The position numbers were made by a program, and so were the translations under genes. Under the pieces are notes generated by a model. It was not told the DNA's origin and made no database searches. It saw only the letters and a list, made by a program, of their open reading frames with translations. A stretch of 64,000 bases of DNA from Podarcis cretensis (taxonomy: Eukaryota), in contig OX638149.1 of the NCBI GenBank assembly GCA_951804945.1, positions 87,668,001 to 87,732,000 on the forward strand. The letters run 5' to 3'. The stretch's first letter is position 1. The number at the start of each line of letters is the position of its first letter. This document shows, one piece after another, positions 18,180 through 57,300 of this stretch.

Positions 18180-44027
<25,848 letters not shown>

Positions 44028-45383
44028 CCAAGCAACGAGAACAACTCAGCAGCTGACAGTGACAACAGCAAATCCTGCAAGGATGTGGCTTCGAAGCAAA
44101 AAAGGCAGCAGTTGCCACCTCTGCTGTTAGATTTCTGAACCTCCTCTGTATGGCATAAAGGGGGAAATGCTCAGGCACCCAAAGCACACACAAGTTAGCA
44201 GTGAAGCCATGGAGACCAAACTGGAGGAAGACTTCAGTCTGCGTACTGTTCCCAGCATGCAGTTCTTCATGAGCAGGACCTGCCCGTAGTGCTAGAGCAA
44301 CTTCAGAGTATATTCTCCAAGCTACTGCCAGCGTTCCTGGGAAAGCTGTTGCTTGGTGATCCAGGTGTATTATCAGGGAATTGCGAAAGGGTGGTGGGTG
44401 GGGGGAGGCAGGGACCAGGGCTGACTTGCCCCACTGTTCTCCCCAGCAAAATGTCTTCCCTTGCAAAGATGAATGGAGTGTGGAGGTGGGGGGCATGCGT
44501 GAACATTTGCCAGCACTTTGTATACAACCACAGAGGGAGAAGCCTGCAGAATGGCTGTGTGTGTGTTTTTGTAAGTTCTTATTTTGAGGTGTCCCGTTTT
44601 AATTTTCATAAACTCGAAAAAGTGTTTTCAGATCCCTGGATCCCGTTTCTAGTTTTGCCTGTGGGGGAGAATGATTCAAAAAGGGTTAGGGTAATGAACC
44701 CCATGCCCCCCTCCAGATGTTGGCAGACTACAACTCCCATCATCCTTATTAGGCCATGCTGGGAGCTTGGAGTCATGCTGACAACAACAGGTTTTCTATC
44801 TCAAAGGAGTTTTGGCTGGCAGGCAGATGGGATGGAGACCCTGCTCACTTCTGCACAACGGAGAGCACAGAGAGAAAGTGCTTCTCAAATGGGTCTGGTT
44901 TACTTGGATCCCTTGACTACAAGGACACTGAAAAACAAGAGGGGACCTGGAGTCACAGAGACAGGGTAGAAAGGAAGAGCAGGGCACAGAAAAATAATAA
45001 GAAATGTCTTTCTATCAGCCCAGGTAGCTGCTTTTCTGTTTGGTGGCTCTATGGAGGCCGCTTTCAGAAGGACCTAAATGGTTCCTACTGTAAAGCTATT
45101 CAGCTCCAGGCAGTCTTGGGTTGCGTGGGCAAGTGATGGTGGCCCTGGCCAAGACTCTGGGAATTCTGCCCCTAGATCTTTAGACAGAACTATCCATGGA
45201 CCTAGCGCTGGAGAGAGTAACAGACACAGAGGGGGAAAGGAGCCAATCCCTAGTTCTGATCAGTTTCAGCTTTATCTTTGCAGCGTCAGACATTAGTTTG
45301 TTGCCTTACTGCTTCTAACTTCAAGAAGGCACCACAACAACTTAAAACAGCAACTGAAGGAGGAAGCCAAGAACAGTGGCCCT

Positions 45384-45917: not shown

Positions 45918-46115
45918 TCAGTCGTCGTCCTGTTGCAGCTGCTGGTGCCTGCTCTGATACCACAACATGGTGGGGAGGTTCTGGCAGCCTTGGTAGCGGC
46001 GCTGGCGCTCCTCTTCCCCCAGGGGTGGCACAGAGTGGCAGGGTGCCCCTGCTAATGAGACGTCAAGCAGCTGTGCTGGGGTGCCCGAGCCAAAGACTGC
46101 AGACCATGGACCCAC
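45918..46115 (-). CDS. Uncharacterised gene, last coding exon 7
   Basis: Acceptor tctcgttccttgcag; VGPWSAVFGSGTPAQLLDVSLAGAPCHSVPPLGEEERQRRYQGCQNLPTMLWYQSRHQQLQQDDD then TGA. Confidence 0.78.
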   Translation of the reverse strand: MGPWSAVFGSGTPAQLLDVSLAGAPCHSVPPLGEEERQRRYQGCQNLPTMLWYQSRHQQLQQDDD

Positions 46116-49100
46116 CTGCAAGGAACGAGAGAGATTGCTTCACTTAAGTTTGCCTTGGGCCACAACTCAATCTGTCATCAGCATTAATGTTTATATAGCA
46201 CTTCCAACGCATCAGTGTTTCAGGTACATTATCTCAGTATCTTAGACAATTGGCCTGTAAGGATGGCCAGTAAAGCAAACTGAATTAAGGCTGCCTGGCT
46301 GGCTTCCACATGCTCTAAAAAATGGTAAGTTTCAGTGACTTCCTTTAGTTTGTTGCATCCAACCCTGTGCCATCACTTGGAATTAACCGATTTAGCCTGG
46401 ATCCATTGCACTTGATTAAAAAATCAGTTCAAACTACCTTGAATGTACACTCCTTTTCCTTTTAATGGCAATGGTCTGTTTTTGAGCAGTAAAACTAATT
46501 GGGTGGGATGTAATAAAACACACGTTTTTCTTTCCATATGTGCCATATTGCACATCAGAAGACTCCTTTAGTGCAAGCTACCTTCCACAAACTTCAGGTG
46601 TCATTCTCTAATTGTCATCACAGATGGCCTGTGTGTCAGTTACCTGAGCAAAGGTTGGCTCTGGCCATTTGCCAAGTTCTTGTTTTCAGCATTGCTGCCT
46701 CTACACCTAAGCATTTATTTCTCAGTCTGTTTTGCTGCCCAATTGATTCCCAACACTTTCCCTACACACAGAGGAGAAACCAAACTGGTTGCAAGATGGT
46801 GCATAAGATGGCTTGGCCTTACAAGGAGCTGTGATCTGCCCTGAACTTGCTGCACAGCACAGGCCAGTTTTCATCTATGTTAATTGGCTAAACACCAATG
46901 TCCCTACTCCCCTCTCCCCTCCCCTGGAACTGGGAGTAAAGCCCAGGGAGTGCTGCCACCCAGTTAGTGATCCTGCCACTAGAAGCAGCCACTTTGAACT
47001 GGAGAGACACCTGTTGCTAATGCCACCTGCCAAAAGCAATTTGAGGATGGGCTTCCTAGTCACTATTTTGAGCCTCCTGGTATTTATGTCCAGAACAAAC
47101 AAATGCATCCTTGCCATCTCTTGAGGGACCATAAATTGGTGGCAGAGCATATGCATGCAGAAGGTAGCAGGTTCGAAACCCGATGTCCCCAGTTAAAAGG
47201 ACCTGACAGCAGGCAACATGAAACCTGAGAGCCACTGCCAGAGTAGACAACATTGGACAATTAGCCTGACTCCATATGTTCCTATGCTCTGCAAACACCA
47301 CGCCTTGGACTCCGAACAAGCACGGCCCACCTTCCTTCCACGGCACTTACCGGCAACAAATGCTGGAGGAGGCACTGGTCAGGCTGCAGTCCGGCCCAGA
47401 ACTCGGCAAAAGCCGACCCACCGCTGGCGGTAGTGGTGGCAGTGGCGGTGGTGGTGCTACGTATGAGCACCACGTTGGGATGGCGCCGTGATGCCCGCAG
47501 CTTCTTTGTCAGTGGCCCCGGATAGCTCTGGTCAAGGAAGAGGAGAACCCGGCGAGCGTTGCAGCTCTCCAAGTCTGCTAGCAGCTCCGAGATGGGGTAC
47601 CGCTCCTTAGGATCTGCCTGTTGCAGGGAAGGGACAGCTCATCAGCACCTGCCCCTTGGTCACAGACACACAAGCACACCCCTCCCCGCTCCACAGTTGG
47701 GAGATCAAGGGGATTCCACTGCCTGGGAGTTAAAAGGAGCGGATTAAATGGGGAAGAGCAAGACAGGGCGAGCACCCACTGCAAAGGCCGGTGTTGTTTT
47801 CTCCCTGCAGGCACACATGAAAGAGCTGGACGGCCCTTTGAAGGGAACAGAGGAGAGGAGAGGGCTGCAGCCTCCACCTGCAGTTCTGTCAGCATCTCTC
47901 CTTCCTCCAGTCGGGCTTTCCAGGACATGCTGGGACAGGTGGGATGACCTCCTCCTCCTCCTTCACCCCACTGCCAAAAGTGGCTCACTTCCCTTTCCAT
48001 TTCCAGCCTAGGAAACCCCAAAGGAAACTTGGCAAATGGCCAAATGCAGGCCTTTGAGAAGGGCTGGTGCCGCTTTGTATGTGTGCACAAGCATCTTAGG
48101 CAGCTGCTCTGCATTTTCCTGCCCCAGTTGGGTTCACTTGGCACCCCGACTTCACTGCTCCCGGCAAGCAATTGATATTGGCTTACCCCCATGTGATAAA
48201 TGCATTATATCGTTAGCATCCCCATTCCCTGCTTGGCTAGGCAGGTGACATTAGCATCAATAGCCAAGGTCTTTTTTTTGGATGATCATGATGAAGTAGG
48301 ATTCATTCATTTAACAAGATGCATATACTGCTTGACTGTTGTAAAACCTCCAAGCGGTTTTACTTGTAAGTTAACCTGCTGCTGCTGTTGCTTCATTCTG
48401 CACCAACCTGTAGCTTTTCCCAACAAGCAACATTCATCAGTGCTTGGCTGACCACTGGGCAGGTGGCCTGTGGCTGTGGCTATTGTCACGGAATCAAAAG
48501 TCTACCTTTTTAAAAGTGAGGAGCAGTGAAGAACACCATGACAGGTTTCCTATTGGATTTCTATGGGTCAGCATATGGCTGTCTCAATTCACCTGGAGAC
48601 AATTCCTGGGCAGAGCCACAGACTCCTGGACAAAATAATATATTTAATAGCATTGCTCATGGGGACTAATTTAGACCATTTCCTCAATGTATTTCTTCCT
48701 CTCTTTCTTCCTCTGCCTAACTTACCTGGTGGGTTACTCCCCCCCCCCAATAAATTGGCAAGAGATGTGCCCCAAGAGATGATATCTCTGCTGTGAAATA
48801 AGCAGCCCCACTTTGTAACTTGTGCGGTACTGTATTTATTGTGCCCCCACACGTTAATTCACCTATAGAGGTTGTGCACCAGAGGAGGGGTGGGAGGGAG
48901 AGAGGGAAGAGGCACATACCCTTTTCTCCTCCTACAGTGATGTCATACCTGGATCCATCATGCCACCCCACCATCCTCTGATAATGCGCACCCCATCCAC
49001 CCTTAAGCTCTGGAGGGTTTTGGCTACACATGCAAAATTCCAGTAGGATTGGGTTGATATCAATAGTGGGGACAGAGGATGGGATAGAACCTTCCTCCTA

Positions 49101-50681
49101 TCATAGCTAAGGCCAAAGGGCTAAAAAAACTGGACCATTCCCATCATACCTGAACAATGATGATAGATCAGCTTGGCTTGGCTATTTTTAAAAAAATCCT
49201 CAAAGAAAGAAAACAACAGCAGGTTCATTTTGTCTCCTATACCCTTTTGAAATGTGGCCCTGGTGTTATTGGGTTATTGTACTTATTTTGATTTTATATA
49301 TTGTGATCTTTTCTGTGAACCACCCTGAGACCTCCAGGTATAGGGTGGTATATAAATTCAATCAATCAGTCAATACAGAAATGGCTTGTGATGTTTCATA
49401 ATGGGAGTAGAGAGACGAGTGCCTGGGACAGCCAATGCTGGCAGCTCCATGGACAAGTGCTGCCCTGCTCCTCTTAGACAGCCTCTCCCTCGCTTCCAGC
49501 CCTGACCCCCCACTTACAATGCCGTTACGGTTGGCATCCCACAGCAGCATGGTGCCATCGCTGGCTGCTGGGCTGTTGAGGTAGAGCACCAGCGAGTCGG
49601 CGCAGTGGAGGCTCCTGCAGACCAGGGCCAGGTGGGAGCGAATGGCCAGCTTCTCGGTGGCTGGGTGCACGTCGCCCATCTCCACAGTCACTGTCCAGAA
49701 AAGAAGAGGGAGAGAGGGATCTGCTAATCCCGTGTCCCAAAGGCCTGTCTCCTCCCTCCAACCCACTCCAGTCTCGTACACCAAAGCAGCAGTCTCCCCC
49801 ACAGACCACCCAATAATGATTGGTCTTGGCACACCACTTAATGTTTTTTTATGCCTGTTGTACCAATTGGAATACACCATGCTAGATGCTGCCTGATTTT
49901 TCAAGATGTATTCCGAGTCCTTATACATGTTTTATTGTGTTCTGTCGATTCAAATTGTAATGTAATAAAACACAAGGAAAGAAAAATGAAGAAGCATGAA
50001 AATACAATTGACTATTTAATGCGAACCACCTGAAAGAAGCTTGACCACAGTTTGGGAACACCTTCCCCGTGGCATCCGCATTCCTCCTACCGCCACTTGC
50101 TCGCTGCCACCACATCCTGCTCATCTGGGAAGGGGCCAGAGTTGGGAACAGCATGGGAATATTTGCTAGGCTCCCTCATTAGCCCACTCTGCAAAATGCC
50201 CCACAGGTGGTTTGGTCCACACCGTGCAGGCCTGTAATTTTTGCAGGGACATGTAACCCAAAGGCGAGATTTCACCAGGGCTAGATGCATTCACACCCAG
50301 CCTTTTCTCAACTGGGATGGACAAGTAGGGTGACACTCTGAAATGCAATACACCCCATGCAGAACCTTGGTGGCAGGGAGAAGGAAGTGCCAGGAACAGA
50401 GTCTTGCCTCTGAAGAGCAGCTCATGGCATCCAGACACCCCTGAGTAGGGCTGGGGGGATATATTGATATATCATCCAAAACCGGTTTCTGGCCACATGG
50501 TAATAACTGTTTCAAAATCAATGACCCAGCAATATATTGTGAATCATGTGTGTGTGTGTGCGCACGCGCACGCACGCACGCACACACATTATGCAAAAAT
50601 CACAATACTGGAAAAATCAGGAAACCACCCAGTGCTTCTGTGTCTCCCTGAGTTGAATGAGCAGGTGCTCTTCCCTCCCTC

Positions 50682-50736
<55 letters not shown>

Positions 50737-53700
50737 TGCGCGCGCACGCGCCTGTGTCTACACCTGGAAGCAGCCAGCAGAAAGCACAGTTTTGTGAAGC
50801 TAGCTGATGCTGAAATTTAAGGAAGTCCCTCCAGCTCGCTTGAGCAGGAGCGGCATGGGGATTTGCTCAGCTGTAGGGCCGGGTGAAGTATCTCGACTGC
50901 TTCTTTCTCCCCTCCTTATCTCTTCCTTCCTCCTTATTTTAGACATCATGATATATCAGTCTATCACAATATTTAGCTGGCGATATATCACAATGTTGAA
51001 AACCAGGTTATCGCCCAGCCCTACCTATGGGCACTGAAAAGTCACCCACCCCCCTAAGGAAACCAAGAGCCCGTCCCACCCTTGCAGCCGACAGCTAGCT
51101 CTCTTTCGTGCTGGTACCTGAGGCCTGCCCCTCACTCGCGAAGAAGGCCTTGATGTGCTCTTGGCGGAAGCCGTTCCGTCGAAGCATCTGGTAGAAGAGC
51201 AGCAGGTTCTGTGCATGGCGGGGGTAGGTGACCTGCTCCTGCCAGCCACCTGGGGGAGAAGCACAGTAAGCAATCCAGGGGGGAAAACGTGGTGGAGGAG
51301 AGGCTGAAACTGGTTGCAAGGGGCATAGGAGCACTAACACTGCCCCTCAAGGAGACAAGGGGCCCGTTAAGCTCATGCCCAGTAGAACAAAGCTGTAGCT
51401 CAGTAGCAGAGCATGTACTTGCACACAGAAAGAGCCAGGTTCAATCCTCGGCATCTCCAAGTAAGGTTGGGCATGTCCGCTGTCTGAAACCTTGGAGAGC
51501 CATTGCCAATCAGAGTGGCCAATACTCAGCTAGGTGGACCAATGGGCTAATGCAGCACAAGACTGAGCCTCCAATCAGATTCACCCTCATCCATCCGCTG
51601 GCCAAATGCAATGGCTTGCAGTGGTGTGCGGTCAGTGGACTGGGGGACTAGGCTAGTTCCCTAAATGTCCCCACTAAATTAGAATATTGAAGTATTAAAG
51701 CCTGGCACTTCCTTCCCAAAGCCCAGGAAGCTTCTGCCCGGCTTAGGGAGGGAGGCGTGATGTTCTCTCTCACACAATGTCACCCGCTCCCGCAATCGCC
51801 CTCACAAGCTGGTGCCTCTGGCCCTAACTGTTACCCTAGGAAAAAATTCACCTCACACCGCTGATGGCTTCAGATTCCCAGAACCAGCAGATCCTTGCAG
51901 CCGCCAAGCACCACTTCTTACCTGCAATCAGCACAGCATGGTCACACGTCTGGTACATGCGGCAAGACTTGTACAGTGGAAGCTGCTGCCTGTGGCATCG
52001 CCGCGTGTTCTTGTTGAGTTCGCAGTAAGCGGCTGTGGAGCTGGAGCTCGCAAGGGGCAGGGGCTCCGGGCAGGGGCTGTATCCACGGAGATCTGGGAAA
52101 GAAAAGGAAGTGTAGCAGGAAGGCAGGAGGGGAAAGAACCTCAGGCCCATGGAGCAGACCCAGACAGACCCTTGAACTGTCATGGGGGCCCCTTCGCAAC
52201 GAGGTCTGGGTAACCACTGTTATCATTTTCAATGGGGTCATTCCACAACAGATCACCACACCTTTACAACATCTGTGCTTGGGATTATTGAAATATAGAC
52301 AACAAAAAATGAATCCACTCATATGGGGTCTAAGAGACCCCTTTTTTTAAAAAAGCAATGGGGACGGAAGTTACTTCTGGGGCGCTGCCAGGATTCAGGG
52401 CCCTGAAGCTCAAACTTCATTCGTTTCAAAGTAGATCCATCTCTGGACACTGGAAATAAGAAAATGATTGGTGAGTTGAGATGCCCTAGGCCAAGGGCAA
52501 ACTTGGGACAATTAAGTTCCAGTTCTGTGGTGCTCCCTTCCAGCTGAGATTCCAACACCTCTTGAAGACCTTTTCTGTTTCAGCAGGCACTTTAAGAAAG
52601 TTTTCTGCTTTTTTACAGTTTTAACTGATTAGTGTATCTTTTTAACCTTACTGTACACCGCTTAGGGACTAAGGTGTTAAGCGGTATATAAACTGTTGAA
52701 ATAAATAAATAAAAAGGTGGTCACATTGTTCTCCCCCTTCCCATTTTGTCCTCGCAACCAGGTAGGTTAGGCTGAGAGACAGTGACTGGCCCAAGGTCAC
52801 CCTATGAGCTTCAAGGCTGAGTGGAGTCTCCCAGGTCCTAACCAGGCAATCTAACCACTGTGCCAGACTGTCATCTACCTGCTGCATCCCTTCTTCCTCC
52901 ACTGCCCACATACCAACCTTGGAACTTCCTAAATCCTGAAAGTGGGGGAGTCTCCTTTGTGGTTTACAATCCTGATCCTGTAACCCTGCCCCCCTCCACC
53001 CCACTGCCCGTCCAATCCAGGGACTTACCCACACAGTTCAGCCTTTGCAGGTGTTTGGGGTCCTGTGCCACCACTACCATGGGCAGGAAATGGATCTCAC
53101 AGAGACCGACGGGGGGCTCCTCGCGGCGGATGCGTCCCGCAGACCGCTGGCTCCTTCCCTTGCCACGGCCCGGTCGGCGCTTCAGCTGGTTCTCACAGCG
53201 GCTCCTCTGGGCTGGAATCAAGCATTCATAGCCCCCTGCAGGCAAAGAACAAACATGTCCGGAATAAAACCTGCTGAGAAAGTTCCCTATACAGGGCTGC
53301 CTTCAGGTGTCTTCTAAAAGTCAGATTGTTGTTTATTTCATTGACATCGTTCCACAGGGCGGGTGCAACTACAGAGAAGGCCCTCTGCCTGGTTCCGTGT
53401 AGCTTTGCTTCTTGCAATGAGGGAACCGTCAGAAGGCCCTTGGTGCTGGACCTCTGTGTCTGGGTTGAACGATGGGGGTGGAGATGCTCCTTTAGGTATT
53501 CTGGGCCGTGGTTGTTTAGGGCTTTAAAGGTCAGCATCAACACTTCAAATTGTGCTCAGAAATGTACCAGGAGCTAATGGAGGTCTTTCAGGACCAGTGT
53601 TATATGGCCCGGTGGCCGCTCCCAGTCACCAATCTGGCAGCCGCATACTGGATTAGTTGTAGTTTCCCCACGCAGAATACATTGCCGTAGTCCAAGTGGG

Positions 53701-56700: not shown

Positions 56701-57300
56701 GGAACGGGAGGAAATAGGAAGCCTGGGGTGGGACGGGCGCAAGCCAATATGTTCTCTGCTGGGAGTGGTCGTCCACGGGGCGCGCGTGGCCTGAGGATGC
56801 GGCGTTCACTCACCCACGTAGAGGCTGTCGCGGCTCCGGCACCGGCGTGGGCTGACGTTGAAGTCGACATAGAAGAGCAGGAGCGGGTGGCCGAAGTTGG
56901 CGCCCGGGGTGGGGTCCAGCACGAGGATGGCGTCTTGCGCGGAGGGCGCGCCGGTGGGGCGCAGCGGGCTGCCGCTCTGGTTGCGGCCGGCCACGAAGGG
57001 CGGAGCGCCGGGTCTGTCTCCCCAGCCGTCGGGCAGCAGCGCCCGCACCTTGTGGCCCGGGCGGGCGGGCTCGGAGACATAGACGGCGGGCCCCGGCCCC
57101 TGGGAAAGGCGCGCCAGGCGCTGGCACTGCGGCCGCGGCAAGAGCCCGCCGCGCTCGGGACACTGCGCCGCCGCCACGTGCCGAAGCGCCGCCGCCGCCC
57201 AGCGCGCCACCCGCGCCTCGGAGAAGCGCTTCCCCGACGGGGCGGCCGCGCACGGCCAAGCGAGGGACGCAGCGGCCAGCGCCAACAGCAGCGGGGCCAT
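45918..57300 (-). CDS. Uncharacterised secreted protein, 544 aa, with a C-terminal degenerate legumain/caspase-like (clan CD, C13-like) domain; exons 57300-56814, 53235-53029, 52092-51922, 51249-51118, 49690-49518, 47617-47351, 46115-45918
   Basis: Seven exons with GT-AG sites, polypyrimidine tracts and consistent phases (1,1,1,1,0,0) give an open 1635-nt CDS from an ATG in a CpG island to TGA. Hydrophobic signal peptide MAPLLLALAAASLAWPCAAA. Motifs HAVLIAGGW..YPRH..FYQMLRRNGF..EHI, DSLVLYLNSP and RVLLFLDQSYPG parallel legumain motifs by eye. Confidence 0.85.
47125..47286 (+). mobile_element. Degenerate tRNA-derived SINE (Squam2-like)
   Basis: tggcagagcat..tgcatgcagaagg..caggttcgaaacc head and tgaaacc.tgagagccactgcca body, shared with 51392-51555. 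Confidence 0.55.
47351..47617 (-). CDS. Uncharacterised gene, exon 6
   Basis: Acceptor cccttccctgcaacag, donor |GTAAGT; ADPKERYPISELLADLESCNARRVLLFLDQSYPGPLTKKLRASRRHPNVVLIRSTTTATATTTASGGSAFAEFWAGLQPDQCLLQHLLP. Confidence 0.82.
49518..49690 (-). CDS. Uncharacterised gene, exon 5
   Basis: Acceptor tcttcttttctggacag, donor |GTAAGT; VTVEMGDVHPATEKLAIRSHLALVCRSLHCADSLVLYLNSPAASDGTMLLWDANRNGI. Confidence 0.82.
50685..50750. repeat. (CT)n(GT)n(GC)n compound microsatellite
   Basis: Direct reading; a second alternating purine-pyrimidine tract lies at about 50547-50588. Confidence 0.9.
51118..51249 (-). CDS. Uncharacterised gene, exon 4 (legumain-like RH motif)
   Basis: Acceptor ttctcccccag, donor G|GTACCA; GGWQEQVTYPRHAQNLLLFYQMLRRNGFRQEHIKAFFASEGQAS. 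Confidence 0.8.
51392..51555 (+). mobile_element. tRNA-derived SINE (Squam2-like)
   Basis: A-box TAGCTCAGTAGCAGAGC and B-box GGTTCAATCC, followed by a non-tRNA body ctgaaaccttggagagccattgccaatcagagt...ggaccaatgg. Confidence 0.65.
51922..52092 (-). CDS. Uncharacterised gene, exon 3
   Basis: Acceptor cttttctttcccag, donor G|GTAAGA; DLRGYSPCPEPLP...CELNKNTRRCHRQQLPLYKSCRMYQTCDHAVLIA. Confidence 0.82.
52740..52865 (-). mobile_element. Squam3/CORE-like SINE fragment
   Basis: Reverse copy related to 17893-18109 (aggttaggctgagagacagtgactggcccaaggtcacc..gagcttca). Confidence 0.6.
53029..53235 (-). CDS. Uncharacterised gene, exon 2 (Cys-containing, basic linker with RIRR)
   Basis: Acceptor ttctttgcctgcag, donor G|GTAAGT; GYECLIPAQRSRCENQLKRRPGRGKGRSQRSAGRIRREEPPVGLCEIHFLPMVVVAQDPKHLQRLNCV. 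Confidence 0.82.
53275..53800 (-). mobile_element. L2-clade LINE ORF2 3' fragment in intron 1 of the uncharacterised gene
   Basis: ORF 53226-53543 (-) contains LMLTFKALNNHGPEYLKEHL...RQRAFSVVAPALWN...FRRHLKAALY, the C-terminal L2 ORF2 signature. Confidence 0.75.

Follow-up and report, generated by a model that had tools for sequence, protein, structure and literature searches.

A probable secreted C13-type pseudo-protease in the lizard Podarcis cretensis, with replacements at the catalytic positions that are near-invariant across Bilateria

The window analysed here, 64,000 nucleotides (nt) of contig OX638149.1 of the lizard Podarcis cretensis (positions 87,668,001 to 87,732,000 of the forward strand; zero N), carries on its minus strand a seven-exon gene whose product is probably an ancient, selected and secreted pseudo-protease of family C13, the family of legumain and of PIGK, a subunit of the glycosylphosphatidylinositol (GPI) transamidase. 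Its most likely role would be that of a non-catalytic binding module. We infer that the protein does not cleave peptides as a cysteine protease because the His/Cys dyad, which is strictly conserved among clan CD proteases (PMC9604545), is lost: the loop after strand β3, where the catalytic His belongs, reads Asn-Ser-Pro, and the residue at the nucleophile position after strand β4 is Ser. The replacements are near-invariant across Bilateria, and for that reason we regard them as a selected state and not as decay.

The two replaced positions, and a loop between them, are encoded by exons 5 and 6 of the gene:

49569-49577, minus strand: Asn371-Ser372-Pro373, occupying the place of the clan CD His-Gly after strand β3, with Pro373 at the His position to about one residue
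47603-49538, minus strand: D384-A-N-R-N-G-I-A-D-P-K-E395, a 12-residue DxNxNGxxDxxE motif between the former catalytic positions
47525-47533, minus strand: Asp419-Gln420-Ser421, replacing Glu-Ala-Cys189 of legumain, with Ser421 at the nucleophile position

The codon of Pro373 (CCA, 49571-49569) falls within LYLNSPA in exon 5 and that of Ser421 (AGC, 47527-47525) within FLDQSYPG in exon 6, and the 48 residues that separate them span an intron of 1900 nt. An earlier note on this DNA had named the two residues as replacements of a catalytic dyad; its codon coordinates, residue numbering and spacing of 48 residues all agree with the minus-strand reading and the seven-exon gene model. Since the window protein contains neither His nor Cys in the 10 residues to each side of Pro373 and Ser421, the loss of the catalytic His holds independently of the exact register discussed below.

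The predicted structure places the C-terminal domain (about 220 residues) in clan CD, as a diverged caspase/hemoglobinase fold of the C13 type whose nearest family is C13. The exons were searched singly and joined only for codon numbering, and annotated orthologues (P0001, P0056 and others) were substituted for the whole protein; the structure was modelled with AlphaFold2 on the 87%-identical Elgaria orthologue P0001 with an alignment of 43 sequences. The model has a mean predicted local distance difference test score (pLDDT) of 69.5 and a predicted template modelling score of 0.71, the blocks from 280 to 500 lying mostly at a pLDDT of 70-93. The top Foldseek match in the PDB is PIGK of the human GPI transamidase (7wld_K, E 4e-7); legumain, caspases, MALT1 and a metacaspase come next, all at a probability of 1.00. 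In VIA-align, Arabidopsis metacaspase 4 (AtMC4) reaches Z 17.9, human legumain Z 17.3-17.5 (model residues 283-502 against 26-282, root-mean-square deviation 2.9-3.0 Å, about 197 residues), PIGK Z 16.9, and the plant asparaginyl endopeptidases and ligases Z of about 17. The neighbours of the domain in the ESM Atlas, both by features and by structure, are Peptidase_C13 clusters, with TM values of 0.7-0.8 by query. Because the model of the orthologue matches legumain and PIGK at Z of about 17, the resemblance to C13 is not due to chance.

At the level of sequence the Pfam match to Peptidase_C13 is only borderline. At E<1, PF01650 (gathering cut-off 22.8 bits) matches 16 of the 43 members, of which lungfish P0091 with 23.7 bits and Mobula P0096 with 24.0 are the two that exceed the cut-off. 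Family profiles run against PDB sequences find plant legumains and asparaginyl ligases at E 0.06-1.4 over strand 1 and helix 1. Single exons gave nothing significant against Pfam, NCBIfam and PDB sequences, the best hit being NCBIfam caspase_w_EACC1 for exon 6 (E 0.12), and a phmmer search of the PDB with the Lymnaea homologue returned no clan CD match.

The assignment of Ser421 to the position of the catalytic Cys is supported by three concordant lines of evidence. In the P0001 model, strand RVLLFLD ends one residue ahead of Gln-Ser. The Pfam C13 match of four members starts at profile position 149-151, 9-10 residues ahead of the Ser (R-R-V-x-x-F-x-D-Q-S), which makes the Ser profile position 159-160 in all four. 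In a weak second stretch of alignment, HMMER pairs the S-G two residues past the Ser with the S-G directly after Cys-Glu of plant legumain 9va4 (EACESG). For the His, motif spacing and strand ends make Pro373 the equivalent of legumain His148 to about one residue, with Ala374 as the other possibility. Strand SLVLYLN ends at Asn371, and the corresponding strand of the orthologue model covers 369-375; counting from the conserved Tyr, as in Y-F-T-D-H of legumain, leads to Pro373, a lead and not a test, and counting back from the following Gly leads to Ala374. HMMER further aligns Tyr297 with legumain Asn42 (the Asn of ..NYRH.. in asparaginyl ligases and legumains) and Arg299-His300 with the conserved Arg-His motif of legumain. 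At the positions of this motif and of legumain Glu187 the residue type is kept (R/H/Q-His and Asp/Glu), and the position of Asn42 is one that varies across clan CD (PMC9604545). All three catalytic positions of legumain therefore differ in the lizard protein, Asn42 being Tyr297, the His148-Gly loop Asn-Ser-Pro373-Ala and Glu-Ala-Cys189 Asp-Gln-Ser421, with the register of Pro373 given to about one residue. The clan CD domain and the Ser in place of the catalytic Cys, both claimed by the earlier note, are thus borne out by the model and by the register; of its claim for Pro373, the lack of a His in the loop after β3 stands, and the equivalence to His148 holds to about one residue (Pro373 or Ala374).

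Whether these replacements mark a selected state or a decaying copy was to be read from an alignment of orthologues. The alignment comprises all 152 fetched homologues of at least 300 residues, of which 150 are aligned at the Pro and Ser sites, and it spans squamates, turtles, lungfish, sharks, teleosts, amphioxus, molluscs, an insect and nematodes. The triplet in the His loop reads NSP in 141/152, with the Pro itself in 148/150; the nucleophile position is Ser in 148/150, and residue 419, ahead of Gln-Ser, is Asp or Glu in 149. Of the two sequences without the Pro, P0006 from Phrynosoma is chimeric and P0031 from Caretta is frameshifted, both plainly faulty gene models, and the two that lack the Ser are again P0031 and one pipefish with Thr (P0194). 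Lys346 is present in 149/149, and Asp282, Trp291, Asp384, Glu395, Glu401, His436, Asn438 and many Cys are likewise invariant or near-invariant; no His is invariant across the family. The near-invariance of NSP and of D/E-Q-S across Bilateria argues for a selected state and against a decaying copy, and the replacements of His and Cys predate the bilaterian radiation and have been held since. The protein combines a clan CD fold, a lost dyad and a gene under purifying selection, as do the clan CD pseudo-proteases, which form a functional class and not a single lineage. One Coregonus protein reads H-S-P in place of N-S-P.

The gene is intact and is transcribed in related lizards. It runs from 57300 to 45918, with 544 codons and a coding sequence of 1635 nt that contains one terminal stop, and all of its introns are GT-AG. 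The exons are as follows:

56814-57300, minus strand: exon 1, with the ATG at 57300, a signal-like hydrophobic N-terminus and the start of the N-terminal domain
53029-53235, minus strand: exon 2, 207 nt, phase 1-1, with the Cys-rich segment CL..A....C.NQLKRR...C.I.FLP
51922-52092, minus strand: exon 3, terminating in CDHAVLIA, strand 1 of the C13-like domain, where HMMER aligns hAvllsgg with wAVLIAGS of legumain
51118-51249, minus strand: exon 4, encoding GGWQEQVTYPRHAQNLLLFYQMLRRNGFRQEHIKAFFA, which includes Tyr297 and Arg299-His300
49518-49690, minus strand: exon 5, with a helix, strand β3 (SLVLYLN), the NSP motif and the first half of the calcium-loop-like motif
47351-47617, minus strand: exon 6, with the second half of the loop, a helix, strand β4 (RVLLFLD), DQS, strand β5 (NVVLIRS) and a lacertid Thr/Ala-rich insert
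45918-46115, minus strand: exon 7, with the conserved C-terminal AGAPC...GCQNLPT.LW and the TGA stop at 45920-45918

The C-terminal part of the exon 5 translation is SLVLYLNSPAASDGTMLLWDANRNGI / HCADSLVLYLNSPAASDGTMLLWDANRNGI, and the N-terminal part of the exon 6 translation is ADPKERYPISELLADLESCNARRVLLFLDQSYPGPL / ADPKERYPISELLADLESCNARRVLLFLDQSYPGPLTKKL. All seven exons are covered in tblastn by annotated proteins of Podarcis muralis, P. raffonei and Lacerta agilis at 75-100% identity per piece, or 88-100% when the exon 3 piece that extends into the intron is set aside; exon 1 has 98.8% identity to the Podarcis and Lacerta proteins. Exon 2 was identified through the 544-residue orthologues and tblastn, and its segment is also kept in the amphioxus and fish homologues; a six-exon model, in which the two sites would be Pro304 and Ser352, was discarded because it omits this exon. 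The junctions from exon 3 through exons 4, 5 and 6 to exon 7 are matched exactly by spliced contigs from three public runs (X1, X2 and X3; two related organisms, two studies), with joints at 51247/51920, 49690/51118, 47616/49517 and 46113/47349, all CT..AC on the plus strand, and one of the contigs is 2740 nt long. The exon 1/2 and 2/3 junctions are based on orthologues only. The RNA label of the runs is a guess only, and we conclude that the gene is transcribed in the related lizards because such spliced contigs are impossible from genomic DNA. Among the 14 exon differences listed between the window and the related lizards, 13 are synonymous, and the codons of Pro373 and Ser421 are unchanged.

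The only non-synonymous difference in the related transcripts, Pro469Thr, lies inside the Thr/Ala-rich insert STTTATATTTAS (47420-47455, minus strand, exon 6), which follows strand β5, varies in length among lacertids and is absent from other squamates. At the other extreme, the C-terminal motif of exon 7 (45918-46115), AGAPC....PP......Y.GCQNLPT.LW in its fuller form, is kept from nematodes to lizards.

The motif D384-E395 is formed only after splicing, DANRNGI/ADPKE spanning the exon 5/6 junction, and conforms to the calcium-loop consensus of 12 residues, D-x-[DN]-x-[DN]-G-x-x-[DE]-x-x-E. Among 150 homologues, between 126 and 148 conserve each of its residues Asp, Asn, Asn, Gly, Ala, Asp and Glu. 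The modelled loop is preceded by a short strand (383-385) and leads into a strand (400-402) and a helix (403-409). The motif is best described as a putative calcium loop of the DxDxDG type and not as a canonical EF-hand, because the model has no entering helix. It is mainly because of this inserted loop that the former catalytic positions lie 48 residues apart here and 41 in legumain.

The full-length members have a hydrophobic, signal-like N-terminus, no further hydrophobic segment and 17-22 Cys, and because of these features a secretory or extracellular location fits the predicted protein; the earlier note had proposed an extracellular one. Ahead of the C13-like domain lies a Cys-rich N-terminal domain of about 215 residues (about 25-240), which is encoded from 56814-57300 and 53029-53235 and carries the motifs LDP.P.A.FGH...F..D and C.L.....C.N.L.R...C.I.FLP. 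In the ESM Atlas, this domain had no feature match and no convincing structural neighbour.

The family is widespread. An exhaustive protein search with exon 6 found 55 proteins, including the 544-residue Elgaria P0001 at 86% identity, and a word search with P0001 found 162 relatives. These are entries named 'uncharacterized protein LOC...' from squamates (83-91%), turtles (58-68%), lungfish, bowfin, gar, sharks, rays and many teleosts, and the teleost members carry NCBI names after zebrafish si:ch211-67e16.11, of which the lizard gene is the orthologue. More distant members occur in amphioxus, Lymnaea, Batillaria, Octopus, the mayfly Cloeon and the nematodes Trichuris and Soboliphyme, and there is also an arthropod cluster in the ESM Atlas. 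Among the 120 matches listed for the P0001 search, none is from mammals, birds, crocodilians or amphibians, which is suggestive only. None of the relatives from this search carries a precomputed Pfam domain. A literature search found no paper naming the zebrafish symbol ch211-67e16.11, and broader searches on animal pseudo-proteases of C13 or clan CD yielded no work on the family.

As a pseudo-protease, the domain would act by binding, without catalysis, either within the secretory pathway or extracellularly. The old substrate groove would probably still be used for binding, because the residues at the positions of the legumain Arg-His motif and Glu187 are kept in type, and calcium, acting through the near-invariant DxNxNGxxDxxE loop beside the site, would probably control or stabilise the domain. 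Several observations weigh against this account. The window exons and lizard P0001 have no Pfam C13 match, and the structural model is that of the P0001 orthologue and not of the window's own spliced protein. The members from clade I nematodes (P0045, P0050, P0071 and P0041; Soboliphyme and Trichuris) read H-G-P or H-A-P, and D-H-S, so that one His stands two residues ahead of the invariant Pro and another directly ahead of the invariant Ser. In addition, an invariant Ser at the nucleophile position and an invariant Pro in the His loop are not obviously needed by a pseudoenzyme and would also fit a changed mechanism. Two further readings, a lineage-specific copy of a C13 protease that is decaying or has become a pseudogene, and a chance resemblance of the motifs in a protein with no clan CD domain, might be suspected from the lack of a significant Pfam or PDB sequence match for the single exons and the lizard protein, but we regard both as excluded: the open reading frame is intact over seven GT-AG exons, relatives have spliced transcripts in which 13 of the 14 differences are synonymous, the motifs are near-invariant in 152 homologues, and the structures match at Z 17-18 over about 200 residues.

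A changed mechanism would make the protein a working enzyme on the C13 scaffold, with Ser421 as the nucleophile after a Cys-to-Ser exchange and Lys346, His300 or the calcium site as its aid, or with a Cys-independent, ligase-like reaction. We consider this unlikely. It would account for the near-invariance of Ser421 (148/150), Lys346 (149/149), Asp384, Glu395, Glu401 and Asn438 across bilaterians, for the residue types kept at the Arg-His and Glu187 positions and for the His of the nematode members, which adjoins the Ser (DHS) and also occurs after β3, but the family has no invariant His, the Pro in the His loop is rigid, and we know of no serine enzyme with a clan CD fold. A more specific form, a calcium-gated extracellular enzyme on the legumain scaffold that uses Ser421 as nucleophile or a Cys-independent, ligase-like reaction possibly proceeding through the succinimide-prone Asn371-Ser372, seems to us somewhat less likely again; we give it some weight because the conservation of the Ser, of a Lys, of several acidic residues and of the pocket positions is as strict as is usual for active sites. 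Legumain with Cys189 blocked does still re-ligate cleaved substrate (PMC9604545), which favours a reaction that needs no Cys. The precedents for a Cys-to-Ser exchange point the other way, since a non-enzymatic role is reported for Plasmodium SERA5 (PMC4671257) and the pseudo-orthocaspases with Tyr and Ser are presumed inactive (PMC6426788). Within the reading as a pseudo-protease, a special case would be that the protein acts as a decoy for, or regulates, a genuine C13 enzyme (legumain or PIGK), pairing with it or competing for its substrates or partners in the way c-FLIP does with caspase-8. The fold common to all three, the pocket residues kept in type and the secretory pathway shared with both enzymes would suit such a role, but mammals and birds, which retain both enzymes, are not represented among the 120 matches listed, and the large N-terminal domain has no counterpart in either enzyme; we find the decoy improbable.

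Compared with legumain and PIGK (MEROPS C13, PF01650), the lizard protein has the same fold (Z 16.9-17.5, deviation of about 3 Å over about 200 residues), a similar strand 1 and helix 1 (AVLIAG...RH...Y.MLRRNGF...I..F), a strand β4 followed by acidic-x-nucleophile-x-(S/P)-G, an N-V that opens β5, and the predicted location in the secretory pathway. Legumain (His148, Cys189) and PIGK (His164, Cys206) have His-Gly after β3 and Cys after β4, whereas the lizard protein has Pro/Ala and Ser; relative to legumain it also has Tyr for Asn42 and the inserted 12-residue DxNxNGxxDxxE loop, and relative to both enzymes it has the extra N-terminal domain. It presumably lacks the long β2-β3 insert of legumain, the legumain prodomain and the PIGK membrane anchor. 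Animal clan CD domains that work by binding or scaffolding after loss of the dyad include the pseudo-caspase domain of c-FLIP, the N-terminal caspase-like domain of Raptor and the pseudo-protease domain of separase, but these are intracellular, belong to other families and are not known to have a signal peptide, multiple disulfides or a calcium-loop motif. The pseudo-orthocaspases of cyanobacteria and other bacteria (PMC6426788) are also clan CD proteins with the dyad replaced family-wide, Ser at the Cys position and a presumed lack of proteolysis; they differ in being bacterial, cytoplasmic or membrane-linked members of family C14 with Tyr in the His loop instead of Asn-Ser-Pro. There is no evidence for a common descent of the substitutions in the two families. 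Plasmodium SERA5 (PMC4671257) is likewise secreted, with a cysteine-protease fold, a conserved Ser for the nucleophilic Cys and a reported non-enzymatic role, but its fold is the papain-like one of clan CA, the catalytic His is kept, and it is confined to apicomplexans.

The neighbouring sequence of the window contains other features. Exons of an ABC transporter lie on the plus strand at 37900-44030, convergent with the C13-like gene, and show a Walker motif, the signature LSGGEKQR and Pfam ABC_tran matches at E 1e-6 to 7e-9. By its motif and by synteny, the transporter is a candidate ABCB6. Its last open reading frame (43900-44027, plus strand) closes with a tandem acidic tail, (GETEEGE)n, ahead of the stop, which may be a lineage-specific low-complexity extension. 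Inside the introns of the C13-like gene, 49293-49492 and 50893-51092 combine a very high summed depth of contigs with many loose ends in each of the four runs and are interspersed repeats, not exons, and intron 4 holds a dinucleotide microsatellite block with GA/TC and CA/TG runs (50544-50757). An open frame in intron 1 (53255-53554, minus strand), just upstream of exon 2 and outside the gene, resembles the C-terminal part of a reptile retroposon protein (LTFKALNNHGPEYLKEHL...). The chimeric P0006 of Phrynosoma platyrhinos (KAH0621227.1) fuses an AN1-type zinc-finger protein, ZFAND2B-like, to exons of the C13-like gene, which suggests that ZFAND2B lies next to this gene in lizards; for the AN1 part of P0006 the window contains no match.

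To our knowledge, family C13 in animals is known for two enzymes, legumain and the GPI-transamidase subunit PIGK. The gene described here adds a third animal C13 lineage, ancient, secreted by prediction and unnamed, that reaches from nematodes and molluscs to fishes and reptiles. Clan CD pseudo-proteases as such are already known, and what is new is a bilaterian-wide and probably secreted C13 lineage with fixed motifs of its own, a calcium-type loop and a novel N-terminal domain. The lineage offers a natural test of the clan CD scaffold without its dyad, with a calcium-loop motif set between the former catalytic strands, and the zebrafish orthologue makes its function directly testable. If the Ser should prove to be catalytic, the family would represent a new mechanistic class, the first serine or non-thiol catalyst known with a clan CD fold.

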